Below are positions 4,656-64,000 of a DNA stretch of 64,000 bases, piece after piece; position 1 is the stretch's first letter; each line of letters begins with the position of its first letter. The notes beneath the pieces were generated by a model that saw only the letters and a list, made by a program, of their open reading frames with translations, was not told the origin of the DNA and did no database searches. Both the position numbers and the translations under genes were made by a program. The DNA comes from Podarcis vaucheri. Lineage: Eukaryota. The stretch is taken from assembly GCA_965113315.1 (NCBI GenBank), contig OZ220366.1; one strand, written 5' to 3'.

Positions 4656-4791
4656 CGTAGCTCAGTTGGTTAGAGTGTGGTGCTGATAACGCCAAGGTTG
4701 CAGGTTTGATCCCCACATGGGACAGCTGCCTATTCCTGCAGTACTAGATAATCCTCAGGGTCCTTTCCAACTCTACAATTCTAGAATTCTA
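4656..4791 (+). mobile_element. tRNA-Ile-derived SINE with CR1-type tail
   Basis: tagctcagttggttagagtgtggtgctgataacgccaaggttgcaggtttgatcccc head (A and B boxes) and a ccttttccaactctacaattcta-type tail. Confidence 0.7.

Positions 4792-60243: not shown

Positions 60244-60290
<47 letters not shown>
60244..60290. repeat. (AC)12(AT)n microsatellite, left flank of the PLE cluster
   Basis: Read directly. Confidence 0.95.
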
Positions 60291-60291
<1 letters not shown>

Positions 60292-60403
60292 GCAGGTTTT
60301 GGTGTCTTCGGGTGTCTTCCCGTGTAAGAGTCGGGGTGTCTGGGCGACGTTTCGACGAGGTCTCACTCGTCATCTTCAGGCTGGTGCTTTCGGCTTCTTG
60401 TTA
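60291..60403 (-). mobile_element. PLE pLTR 3' segment, without the 29-nt tail, attached to the long MRPS9 arm
   Basis: Reverse complement of taacaagaag...aaaacctgca, matching 62081-62193; abuts (AT)n. Confidence 0.88.
60344..60381 (-). ncRNA. Minimal type I hammerhead ribozyme motif (PLE), copy a
   Basis: On the - strand: CUGAAGA-U-GACGAG(UGAGAC)CUCGUC-GAAA-C-GUC. 6-bp stem II, palindromic ACGU stem III, stem I only about 2 bp. Confidence 0.75.
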
Positions 60404-60847
60404 ATGCATTACAGAATAATAGGACTGCTTGCCAGTGTAAAAGAGAAAGTGAAATGGGCGGCCATCTTTGTCCCACTGGATTGCTCTTTGCTTTGGAAAC
60501 ATTTCTTCGGGATGCTTCATTACAGGTCTGGCCCTTTTGTCAAACAGACCAGAAGGAAAGAGATAGGCAATAGCTTTATCAATATCCTCTTGGGTAAAAG
60601 TTTCTGGATCTTCTCCCATCATGTTGGCTAAATGTCTCTTTCCTATGTTGAAATCTTCAGTCTGTTTTTTGATAAAAGCTTCTGTGTACTTTTCAGGTCC
60701 TGAAGCAGCAACATTTTTCCTCTGCACTGTTGTGGTAGTGCAGATCAGTCTTAATGTCTTCGGCCCCGCCAACCGCTTCCCCGTCCTCACCGCCCCGCTC
60801 CACGCATGGCTCCCGAGCAGCAAGCGCCCAACCGCCGCCACTACCAT
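60404..60847 (-). pseudogene. MRPS9: Processed (intronless) 5' retrocopy of MRPS9, codons 1-148, fused to a PLE pLTR
   Basis: ATG at 60847-60845, then an uninterrupted frame [10 protein letters not shown]...[83 protein letters not shown], which is the N-terminal part of mitochondrial ribosomal protein S9. No introns. The stop TAA (60403-60401) is supplied by the PLE. Confidence 0.95.
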
Positions 60848-60848
60848 A

Positions 60849-60989
60849 TTTGACAAAAGGGCCAGACCTGTAATGAAGCATCCCGAAGAAATGTTTCCAA
60901 AGCAAAGAGCAATCCAGTGGGACAAAGATGGCCGCCCATTTCACTTTCTCTTTTACACTGGCAAGCAGTCCTATTATTCTGTAATGCAT
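60849..60989 (+). pseudogene. MRPS9: Second, inverted, 5'-truncated MRPS9 retrocopy arm (last 47 codons of the fragment)
   Basis: [11 protein letters not shown]...SYYSVMH; exact reverse complement of 60404-60544; followed by the same pLTR junction. Confidence 0.95.
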
Positions 60990-61131
60990 TAACAAGAAGC
61001 CGAAAGCACCAGCCTGAAGATGACGAGTGAGACCTCGTCGAAACGTCGCCCAGACACCCCGACTCTTACACGGGAAGACACCCGAAGACACCAAAACCTG
61101 CATTCCTGTACCCGTGAAAATCTACGAAAGC
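60990..61131 (+). mobile_element. PLE pLTR 3' segment with tail, attached to the short MRPS9 arm
   Basis: taacaagaag...hammerhead...acctgca plus the 29-nt tail ttcctgtacccgtgaaaatctacgaaagc; followed by (AT)9. Confidence 0.88.
61012..61049 (+). ncRNA. Minimal hammerhead ribozyme motif, copy b
   Basis: CUGAAGA at 61014, stem II GACGAG/CUCGUC, GAAACGUC; predicted cleavage after 61047. Confidence 0.75.
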
Positions 61132-61189
<58 letters not shown>

Positions 61190-61191
61190 GT
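61132..61191. repeat. (AT)9(GT)13(AT)7GT microsatellite between two PLE 3' ends
   Basis: Read directly. Confidence 0.95.
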
Positions 61192-61488
61192 GCTTTCGTA
61201 GATTTTCACGGGTACAGGAATGCAGGTTTTGGTGTCTTCGGGTGTCTTCCCGTGTAAGAGTCGGGGTGTCTGGGCGACGTTTCGACGAGGTCTCACTCGT
61301 CATCTTCAGGCTGGTGCTTTCGGCTTCTTGTTACTGGAACAGAGCAGAATCTGGTGTTTGAGTTCCTATAAATACTGTTGAGGGGTGTGGTGTATAGCCT
61401 CCAACGTTCTAGGCAGAGAGGAAGTTCCTAGATTAGTGTGCCTTTTCTTCTTTTGTTCCTTAATTACTTGAGGGATATCTTGAGTGAT
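61192..61488 (-). mobile_element. Inverted PLE pLTR/3' UTR with tail
   Basis: Reverse complement of the element's 3' end. Joins the + strand copy at 61487 through a 2-nt AT microhomology. An inverted 5' pLTR is a known PLE insertion form. Confidence 0.88.
61274..61311 (-). ncRNA. Minimal hammerhead ribozyme motif, copy c
   Basis: Same motif on the - strand inside the inverted pLTR (core 61276-61309). Confidence 0.75.
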
Positions 61489-62039
61489 CGAGATAGAGAA
61501 ACACCCTCACAACATGAACAAGCGTGACGACACGTCCCGCCTGCCAGACATCTGGAAATTAGCCCTCCCCACAAAAACCGACACCAGAACCAGAGGCACA
61601 CAGAACGCCGTCACCAATCAACCACACCAGACCCAAACCCAGACCCTCTCCACAGACATATTACAGACTCCATCCAGTAGCCAAACTATAGTGGCACCTC
61701 CGGATGCTGCACCCCCCTGCAATCCCTACACAGATCTGGCTGGCACAAGGCACAAAATCACAGCTCGCCCCTATACACGAAGCCAAGCCAGAGCACAACT
61801 AAATGCAGCACAGCCATCTTCTCAAAAAAACTCTTCACAAGCTCAAGAGGTCAAGACACGAAAGCTTTAGCAACTAATCTACACTTAATGACCCACCCAG
61901 TGGTATTCAGAATATCACTCATGAAATCACTCAAGATATCCCTCAAGTAATTAAGGAACAAAAGAAGAAAAGGCACACTAATCTAGGAACTTCCTCTCTG
62001 CCCAGAACGTTGGAGGCTATACACCACACCCCTCAACAG

Positions 62040-62047
62040 TATTTATA
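62040..62047. promoter_or_regulatory. TATA-like element in the pLTR (TATTTATA sense, TATAAATA antisense); also 62916-62923 and 61367-61374
   Basis: Motif only, about 65 nt upstream of the hammerhead core. pLTRs are known to act as PLE promoters. Confidence 0.35.
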
Positions 62048-62060
62048 GGAACTCAAACAC

Positions 62061-62080
62061 CAGATTCTGCTCTGTTCCAG
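62061..62080 (+). promoter_or_regulatory. Splice-acceptor-like site in the PLE pLTR (also AG at 62955-62956 on + and 61335-61334 on -)
   Basis: cagattctgctctgttccag|taacaag; the MRPS9 junction falls exactly after this AG. Confidence 0.7.
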
Positions 62081-62102
62081 TAACAAGAAGCCGAAAGCAC
62101 CA

Positions 62103-62140
62103 GCCTGAAGATGACGAGTGAGACCTCGTCGAAACGTCGC
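62103..62140 (+). ncRNA. Minimal hammerhead ribozyme motif, copy d
   Basis: Core 62105-62138; predicted cleavage after 62138. Confidence 0.75.
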
Positions 62141-62200
62141 CCAGACACCCCGACTCTTACACGGGAAGACACCCGAAGACACCAAAACCTGCATATATAT

Positions 62201-63096
62201 ATAAATGCACGTATCGCAGAACACAAGAATGCCGTCAAAAAAGAAGAAAAAACTTCCTCTCTTTTCCAACACATGAAAGAAACAGGACACGAAATTAATT
62301 TTGCAGATTCCAAATTGCTCTTTAACATGGAACATCACCACAAGAGAATAATCATGGAAGCCATCGAGATAGAGAAACACCCTCACAACATGAACAAGCG
62401 TGACGACACGTCCCGCCTGCCAGACATCTGGAAATTAGCCCTCCCCACAAAAACCGACACCAGAACCATAGGCACACAGAACGCCGTCACCAATCAACCA
62501 CACCAGACCCAAACCCAGACCCTCTCCACAGACATATTACAGACTCCATCCAGTAGCCAAACTATAGTGGCACCTCCGGATGCTGCACCCCCCTGCAATC
62601 CCTACACAGATCTGGCTGGCACAAGGCACAAAACCACAGCTCGCCCCTATACACGAAGCCAAGCCAGAGCACAACTAAATGCAGCACAGCCATCTTCTCA
62701 GAAAAACTCTTCACAAGCTCAAGAGGTCAAGACACGAAAGCTTTAGCAACTAATCTACACTTAATGACCCACCCAGTGGTATTCAGAATATCACTCATGA
62801 AATCACCCAAGATATCCCTCAAGTAATTAAGGAACAAAAGAAGAAAAGGCACACTAATCTAGGAACTTCCTCTCTGCCCAGAACGTTGGAGGCTATACAC
62901 CACACCCCTCAACAGTATTTATAGGAACTCAAACACCAGACTCTGCTCTGTTCCAGTAACAAGAAGCCGAAAGCACCAGCCTGAAGATGACGAGTGAGAC
63001 CTCGTCGAAACGTCGCACAGACACCCCGACTCTTACACGGGAAGACACCCGAAGACACCAAAACCTGCATTCCTGTACCCGTGAAAATCTACGAAA

Positions 63097-63098
<2 letters not shown>
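62201..63098 (+). mobile_element. 5'-truncated Penelope/Poseidon-type PLE, copy 2 (C-terminal half of GIY-YIG endonuclease, pLTR and tail)
   Basis: INARIAEHKNAVKKEEKTSSLFQHMKETGHEINF...KRIIMEAIEIEKHPHNMN fits the R..EH / H..GH / E.IEI / N pattern of PLE GIY-YIG domains. Stop at 62744-62746. About six substitutions versus copy 1. Followed by (AT)26. Confidence 0.9.
62979..63016 (+). ncRNA. Minimal hammerhead ribozyme motif, copy e
   Basis: Core 62981-63014; predicted cleavage after 63014. Confidence 0.75.

Positions 63099-63150
<52 letters not shown>
63099..63150. repeat. (AT)26 microsatellite, right flank of the PLE cluster
   Basis: Read directly. Confidence 0.95.
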
Positions 63151-63153
<3 letters not shown>

Positions 63154-63263
63154 TAAAAATGACATATTGTTCACAATGACAGCTAAGATTTCCTCTGCAT
63201 TTCATGCTCCTCCCTCAGCAATTCACCTTTTAAGCAAACTGCAAACATTGTGAAATGGTGCAG

Positions 63264-64000
63264 CCAGGGCTGTTTTAAGCTTATGCGGCTCCGGGGTGCA
63301 AAGATCCACCCGGCGCCCCTAGGTTGCCCAGAGGTGTCGACCTTTTGGGGGGGCAAAGTTGTTGACCTTTTGCGGGATGCAGGGACTCACAGCGCCAACC
63401 AAAGGGGGTGCCAGCGCAACACACACAGGGGCGTATGAAGGTGGATGCAGGTTCCATGTTGGGGGATGACGAAAAAATGTCGGGTGGTACAGTTGCCGTG
63501 CTGTCCACCCACTGCCCCCCCCCACTGCATGGCGGCGGTTTCGGCTATGCACGCAGTGCCCGGGGAACGATGGGAATGCAAGCCGCAGCGGAGGAAAGAT
63601 CTCCAGACAGTATCTGCGTCCTCATGTTTCGCTGGATTTGTTGCTTCCATAGGCGCTGTTGGTGCACATTCCCCATTGTTCTGTGCTGGCACCCCACATT
63701 GGGCGGTGCTGGGAGCATGCGCCAACAGCAGAAAAGCCACCAAAGGAACCCACAGCTCGGCGCATGCAACAGGATGTGTCGCGTAGCGCCCCCAGCATTA
63801 CACGGCACTCCAGGCGTGGCACTGAAACAGTTAGCCGCCATGCAGCTGGGGCAAGAGCTGACAGCAGAGCAGAGCAGAGCCCATTGGAGTGCCACAGGCT
63901 CTTTTGCTGCGGGCGGCTTGGCACGAGTTTGGGGGTGAGTGTTGGGAGTCCGGGGAAGAGCCGTTCGCAGTAGAAGAGCCTGCGGTGTGCCTATGGGCTC
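63264..64000. mobile_element. GC/CpG-rich probable DNA transposon running off the window end
   Basis: Abrupt shift to GC-rich sequence beginning cagggctgtttt...ggcgcccct; no recognisable protein; other terminus not visible. Confidence 0.35.

Follow-up and report, generated by a model that had tools for sequence, protein, structure and literature searches.

A Penelope-like element in Podarcis vaucheri that seems to have trapped host MRPS9 exons by splicing and pasted them elsewhere in the genome

Among retrotransposons, Penelope-like elements (PLEs) form the class that is least understood. The right end of the window, a stretch of 64,000 nt of Podarcis vaucheri DNA (contig OZ220366.1, assembly GCA_965113315.1), is a cluster of young PLE fragments within a (CA)n(TA)n microsatellite, and in one inverted pair of this cluster the coding sequence of a host gene, MRPS9, breaks off and continues directly as the start of a PLE. 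How was this joint made: by the spliceosome, by a reverse transcriptase changing its template, or by an event at the DNA level?

Layout of the PLE cluster and identity of the element

The features on which the argument rests are given below in window coordinates, with the strand where one applies.

60245..60290, no strand: (CA)n(TA)n microsatellite into which the cluster was inserted and which flanks it on the left
60291-60847, - strand: arm A(-), whole, consisting of a PLE end and an MRPS9 fragment
60291..60403, - strand: PLE end of arm A(-), made up of 5'UTR (30 nt from TAACAAGAAG) and ORF nt 1-83, without a tail, defined by exact matches to other copies
60404..60847, - strand: intron-free MRPS9 cDNA fragment of 148 codons, the first ATG and the last His, by translation and homology
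60849-61132, + strand: arm A'(+), whole, consisting of an MRPS9 piece, a PLE end and a tail
60849..60989, + strand: MRPS9 piece of arm A', a second, 5'-truncated copy with the last 47 MRPS9 codons
60990..61102, + strand: PLE end of arm A'(+), with a joint identical to that of A(-)
61014..61047, + strand: putative minimal hammerhead core with CUGAAGA box, bulged U, 6-bp helix II, GAAAC and GUC
61103..61132, + strand: 30-nt PLE tail of arm A', by which the copy reaches ORF nt +113 instead of +83
between arm A' and arm B, no strand: (TA)n(TG)n(TA)n stretch, from reading of the sequence
61191..61488, - strand: arm B(-), PLE end with tail, acceptor context retained, AG at 61335-61334
61487..62193, + strand: copy B'(+), a PLE truncated at the 5' side and comprising the endonuclease C-terminus, the 3' region and the 5'UTR/ORF start
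61944..61952, + strand: candidate donor CAA/GTAATT in B', matching 7/9 consensus positions, the best in the PLE unit
62066-62080, + strand: acceptor tract of B', with the exon starting at 62081
between B' and C, no strand: (TA)5, from reading of the sequence
62206..63099, + strand: copy C(+), a 5'-truncated PLE with GIY-YIG endonuclease C-terminus, acceptor AG 62955-62956 and tail

Exact-match mapping shows a terminal sequence common to all five PLE copies (5/5), which are arranged as two inverted pairs, A/A' and B/B', with B' and C in tandem. The copies terminate either at +83 of the PLE ORF or, with the 30-nt tail, at +113; a tail occupies 61103-61132, 61191-61220 (inverted) and 63070-63099, and is lacking at 60291 and 62193. 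Copy C is followed by (TA)n, and every outer end of the cluster abuts such a repeat, a favoured PLE target (PMC8557442). The left-flank microsatellite (60244-60287) recurs inverted at 61132-61175 as (TA)n(TG)n, over 44 nt with 98% complementarity, so that the palindrome reaches into the target DNA. Arms B(-) and B', reported as 100% complementary, differ at one base (61413 vs 62001, CCTAG vs CCCAG), and this single difference falls in the tract that leads up to the second strong AG of the PLE unit. Directly after the cluster, a G+C-rich stretch runs from 63260 to 64000, and the GC content over 62001-64000 is 0.50 vs about 0.42 elsewhere in the window. At the other end of the window, a tRNA-like match at 4658-4716 (+), obtained at the Rfam gathering threshold with 29.6 bits and covering model positions 8-63 only, might represent the head of a SINE derived from a tRNA.

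B' and C contain the C-terminal part of an ORF, as in endonuclease-containing PLEs of the Penelope/Poseidon type; in copy C this ORF runs over 62207-62746, and its fragment 62207-62743 resembles GIY-YIG domain proteins of Phrynocephalus forsythii (PF01541, E 8e-32). Further searches were uninformative: the sole named lead from the ESM Atlas was a GIY-YIG row (0.89), a direct Pfam run on the endonuclease half-domain returned no match, and NCBIfam and PDB sequences added nothing. All PLE copies in the window are truncated at their 5' side inside the endonuclease, and reverse transcriptase sequence is absent from them. The 113-nt piece that is attached to MRPS9, termed a pLTR in the initial annotation, is present as described, but the label has to be corrected, since the piece joins the 3'-most 30 nt of the PLE 5'UTR to ORF nt 1-83.

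The start of this ORF has the organization known from PAc, the Poseidon element of Anolis carolinensis (Frangieh 2024, PMC11167929). In PAc, the ORF ATG lies at the start of hammerhead stem II, the cut site follows 26 nt after the start codon, and two adjacent internal start sites of reverse transcription, about 30 nt apart, lie in an AC-rich stem-loop (ORF nt 111-118), the tail being the stretch between the two sites (PMC11167929). In the Podarcis copies, the PLE start codon at 61020 overlaps the CUGAAGA box of the putative hammerhead; the helix II hairpin, which is predicted by folding, GAAAC and GUC lie 3' of the box; and the predicted cut falls after GUC at 61047, 26 nt past the start codon as in PAc. 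A stem-loop resembling the AC-rich one of PAc is predicted for the Podarcis element as well. Rfam detected no hammerhead in the PLE ends, either at the gathering score or with E up to 10, which fits a minimal, helix-III-less PLE hammerhead whose 6-bp helix II contains a bulged base; minimal hammerheads of PLEs with these boxes and with a bulged 6-bp helix II have been described (PMC4209133). Rfam matches to miRNA families at 61059-61264 on both strands (mir-5014, MIR537, mir-1277 and others) stay below the gathering score and were rejected as artefacts of the long hairpin that is formed by the inverted PLE ends and tails.

The joint, the MRPS9 breakpoint and the PLE splice acceptor

The joint lies at 60989/60990 on the + arm and at 60404/60403 on the - arm, where the MRPS9 side ends with TCTGTAATGCAT and the PLE side starts with TAACAAGAAG, with no filler between them. 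On the - strand, 60847-60404 is open for 148 codons, from ATG to a complete His codon (...YYSVMH), and the first PLE triplet is a TAA stop. In the three longer PLE copies, TAACAAGAAG is directly preceded by ttctgctctgttccAG or ctctgctctgttccAG. Microhomology can be judged on the readable side only, and none was found there, MRPS9 ending in ...TGCAT vs ...TCCAG upstream in the PLE. Much of this had been noted in the initial annotation, and it stands: a junction at a splice acceptor of the element was proposed for 60975-61005, a span that contains 60989/60990; the acceptor AGs at 62079-62080, 62955-62956 and 61335-61334 (-) are each preceded by a pyrimidine tract and form part of a CAG in all three copies; the lack of filler and, on the readable side (...TGCAT vs ...TCCAG), of microhomology was borne out; and translation of 60401-60847 (-) confirms both the codon boundary at the end of MRPS9 and the immediate TAA.

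Arms A(-) and A'(+) are reported as 100% complementary over 255 nt (254 nt when the element ends are mapped), the joint included, while their outer ends differ: A(-) ends at +83 without a tail, A'(+) at +113 with one. The same joint in combination with different outer ends points to two cDNAs made from one kind of chimeric RNA. Both arms are antisense to the RNA, and their synthesis was primed on opposite strands of the DNA, so that neither can have served as template for the other. Arm A(-) reaches to 1 nt before the MRPS9 ATG and may be a full run-off copy. Arm B(-) stops at 61488 (equivalent to 61926), 21 nt upstream of the best donor-like site; if A(-) and B(-) are both run-off cDNAs to RNA 5' ends, as they may be, PLE transcription would start near the 61926 equivalent. 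This MRPS9-PLE chimera is the only one found in the window, a single locus. Among indexed sequencing runs, the best contain 0.69-0.80 of the sampled words, about the share that lies wholly inside the MRPS9 part (0.77), and thus give no sign of the chimera or of the joint in any indexed run.

Does MRPS9 break off at an exon end or inside an exon? The question was addressed by homology, using residues 86-148 (60404-60592) only. These 63 residues are 74-86% identical to vertebrate MRPS9; the N-terminus of the fragment is as close to frog as to squamate gene models, and a Pfam search with the 148-aa fragment was uninformative. The test makes use of the fact that gene callers working on genomic contigs read exons into the following introns, where a phase-0 GTNAGN is translated as Val-Ser or Val-Arg. 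The search covered 1.84 billion protein representatives and gave 292 matches; among them, those that extend <100 residues past the equivalent of the His were classed as exon-type (n=65) and those that extend >=100 as mRNA-type (n=80). Val directly follows the His equivalent in 42/65 exon-type ORFs, with Ser (26) or Arg (8) mostly as the next residue, compared with 0/80 mRNA-type MRPS9 sequences, in which the position is taken by Asp (35), Glu (21) and others. The first search had already returned three sequences that read ...H and then VS (P0003, P0004 and P0008, the last from a mammal-type metagenome contig). Gene models point to the same position, with MRPS9 similarity stopping exactly after the His in Gekko kuhli (P0002), Naja naja (P0025) and Eleutherodactylus coqui (P0017), and likewise in Umbra pygmaea (P0010) and Prochilodus magdalenae (P0012).

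Taken together, the Val read-through and the breaks in the models identify the breakpoint as a conserved phase-0 exon end. By this homology, a phase-0 intron right after the His codon should be conserved across animals including squamates and therefore, we infer, in Podarcis vaucheri. Similarity of the exon-type ORFs begins at query residues 4-7, often after a Gln (CAG), which marks another intron at about codons 89-91 that is missing from the 148-codon open frame. On this homology, the host part is cDNA of a spliced mRNA, and its 3' break coincides with an exon end. An exon boundary after the His, given in the initial annotation for human MRPS9, is supported by homology (42/65 vs 0/80, together with the gene models), and the break which that annotation had named as refuting its reading, one in mid-exon, is not what we find. 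Past the His, models P0010, P0012, P0025, P0017 and P0002 go on with unrelated or exon-skipped sequence, from which it appears that the MRPS9 donor at this position is either frequently paired with other acceptors or frequently mis-annotated.

On the PLE side, the position of the joint carries a good 3' splice site. When the 65 AGs within the 839 positions of the PLE unit are ranked by their upstream pyrimidines, the acceptor AG comes second, and this rank makes coincidence of the joint with an acceptor go beyond chance. It is part of a CAG, is preceded by 11/13 pyrimidines and an exclusion zone free of AG, and has a branch-like TTTAT 35 nt upstream; it lies 30 nt 5' of the PLE start codon and 24 nt 5' of the CUGAAGA box. 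Together with the homology-inferred exon end, this site supports the proposal, already made in the initial annotation, that the join was the work of the spliceosome. The acceptor probably belongs to an intron in the PLE's own 5'UTR. Such a native intron is predicted to extend from a candidate donor at 61947, which matches 7/9 consensus positions, to 62080 (134 nt). Precedents exist: in Penelope of Drosophila virilis, an intron of 75 nt lies 46 nt downstream of the start site, is removed by splicing in vivo and is required for expression (PMC2377424), the 3' border of the Drosophila Penelope intron coincides with the 5' end of hammerhead helix I (PMC4209133), and Chlamys-3 of Chlamydomonas has a 5'UTR intron, which Craig et al. 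suggest for other PLEs as well (PMC8557442).

Origin of the chimera

We favour, with a probability of roughly 0.7, an origin in which a spliced MRPS9-PLE RNA, made by joining a host exon donor to the PLE acceptor, was retroposed by the PLE machinery. The sequence of events that we infer would begin with a PLE, complete with 5'UTR and ORF start, situated 3' of an MRPS9 exon and oriented like it, most probably within the intron after the exon whose last codon is the His of ...YYSVMH. Splicing in cis would then join the donor of this exon to the PLE 3' splice site 30 nt 5' of the PLE start codon, resulting in an mRNA composed of MRPS9 exons 1 to k, the PLE 5'UTR and the PLE ORF. The PLE protein would bind the ORF-start region of the chimeric RNA and nick both strands of the (TA)n microsatellite, and reverse transcription would have internal starts, at +83 for one strand and +113 for the other; synthesis toward the RNA 5' end would take the host exons along. 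One cDNA would run on to a point 1 nt from the MRPS9 ATG while its partner would stop early, and the outcome would be the head-to-head inverted pair. The biochemistry that this calls for is in part known from PAc, whose protein cleaves and extends both DNA strands in vitro and has as its minimum in vitro template approximately the first 172 nt of the ORF (PMC11167929). Given this need for about 172 nt, the source RNA should have held more PLE sequence than the copy keeps, and the acceptor should have come from a PLE with its ORF start. More generally, whatever lies 5' of the internal start sites would be copied, an upstream unit in the case of a tandem transcript and host exons in the case of a host-PLE mRNA. 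The inserted copy, which has no sequence from +84 or +114 to +172, should not be mobile again; its coding capacity is limited to the N-terminal 148 residues of MRPS9, the uS9 domain is missing, and the copy is probably inert.

The same evidence at the junction would fit splicing in trans, with one pre-mRNA supplying the MRPS9 donor and another the PLE acceptor, and with MRPS9 itself never having contained a PLE. Transcripts carrying the acceptor were probably abundant, judging from the several young copies in the window, but spliceosomal trans-splicing between unrelated vertebrate pre-mRNAs is rare, and we regard this route as unlikely.

We judge equally improbable a template switch, in which reverse transcription would start from +83 or +113 on a PLE transcript whose 5' end lies at TAACAAGAAG, run off this end and jump to MRPS9 mRNA. 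On a single-unit PLE transcript, internal initiation gives a short cDNA that soon arrives at the RNA 5' end (PMC11167929), and retrocopies made by template switching are known for LTR elements (PMC5131818). Moreover, a TATA-like TATTTATA is located 40 nt upstream of the joint position in the PLE, and the joint could thus be near a transcript 5' end; however, this spacing exceeds the usual ~30 nt, and the first base of the transcript would be T. The joint itself argues against a jump, as it is internal to MRPS9 mRNA and lies neither at the 3' end of this mRNA nor at a microhomology, where a template switch would be looked for, and as it shows no extra cap-derived base and, on the readable side, no microhomology. 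A jump would also have landed on a conserved exon end by chance, for which we estimate roughly 1/100 on the basis of about ten exon junctions that we take to be present in the 1.2-kb coding sequence of MRPS9. In addition, two identical jumps would be needed, since the arms are antisense, were primed at different sites and share the same joint base.

An origin in DNA, either by insertion of a PLE into an older processed pseudogene of MRPS9 or by recombination between the two, or an artefact of a misassembled palindrome, seems very unlikely: inverted repeats of PLEs do trouble assemblies (PMC8557442) and the palindrome continues into the flanking microsatellite, but poly(A), the 3' part of MRPS9 and LINE hallmarks are all absent, the outer ends fall exactly on start sites of PLE reverse transcription beside (TA)n, MRPS9 and the PLE have no common sequence that could mislead an assembler, and a DNA break would not choose an exon end and an AG acceptor together. 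Two further candidates were rejected. A processed pseudogene made by a LINE does not agree with a fragment that consists of the 5' 444 nt only, ends in a PLE and has neither poly(A) nor the mRNA 3' end, and hammerhead self-cleavage is not the source of the joint, as its cut site (61047) is 58 nt inside the PLE part.

Implications and comparison with known systems

PLEs thus seem able to trap host exons by splicing and to paste them elsewhere in the genome. In the reading proposed here, in which a spliced chimeric RNA was retroposed, RNA of any origin 5' of the internal start sites would be copied. A broader and more tentative possibility is that vertebrate PLEs have a conserved 5'UTR-intron acceptor just 5' of the hammerhead and the ORF start, in which case any PLE lying in sense within a host intron might serve as an inherent trap for exons and retropose the spliced 5' portions of genes, because reverse transcription starts inside the PLE ORF and copies everything 5' of the start. 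This could provide a recurrent, PLE-specific route to exon shuffling and truncated gene duplication, of which the MRPS9 copy would be the first example seen. The arm ends match the two internal start sites of reverse transcription, which have been mapped mainly in vitro, and these genomic end signatures offer an in vivo correlate. The locus also points to a working acceptor in a vertebrate PLE, about where the intron of fly Penelope ends; if this acceptor is real, a 5'UTR intron would be an ancient feature of the PLE class. In the literature reached by our search, whose coverage is incomplete, we found no description of spliced host exons having been retrocopied by a PLE. Spliced retrocopies of host genes would be a new product of PLEs, previously known for moving intron-containing genes, and surveys of retrocopies in fish, amphibians and reptiles that look for poly(A) or LINE hallmarks would overlook copies made in this way.

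A weak parallel to terminal-exon trapping comes from a 2026 preprint, in which Xenopus retrozymes that overlap exons tend toward last exons. The closest mechanism is the exon trapping, or 5' transduction, of SVA elements, exemplified by MAST2-SVA (Damert 2018, PMC6139936). There, upstream host exons are spliced to an acceptor in the retrotransposon, the chimeric RNA is retroposed, and the host part ends at an exon end, all as proposed for the MRPS9 locus. SVA differs in being non-autonomous, copied by LINE-1 from the poly(A) tail and restricted to hominoids. Unlike SVA, the MRPS9 locus involves a PLE, a start of reverse transcription inside the ORF of the element, only about 113 nt of the element kept, and a product in the form of an inverted pair.

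Among PLEs, the case of Adineta vaga (Arkhipova 2013, PMC3846280) is similar in that Penelope machinery copies host coding sequence linked to PLE termini. There, an NRPS gene lies between two pLTRs with all its introns kept (PMC3846280), whereas the MRPS9 copy is spliced, covers the 5' part of the gene only and meets the PLE at splice sites. With PAc, the Podarcis element shares a putative hammerhead over the ORF start, two ends about 30 nt apart with the tail between them, an AT-rich target and extension of both strands; the PAc study used pure PLE RNA in vitro and does not describe a host-exon template or a splice site (PMC11167929). Penelope of Drosophila virilis, finally, resembles the Podarcis element, with its putative hammerhead, in having an acceptor just 5' of the hammerhead, upstream of the ORF (PMC2377424, PMC4209133). 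Splicing of the 75-nt fly intron has been demonstrated, whereas the native PLE intron at the MRPS9 locus (134 nt) is a prediction; what is seen at this locus is a host donor joined to the PLE acceptor.
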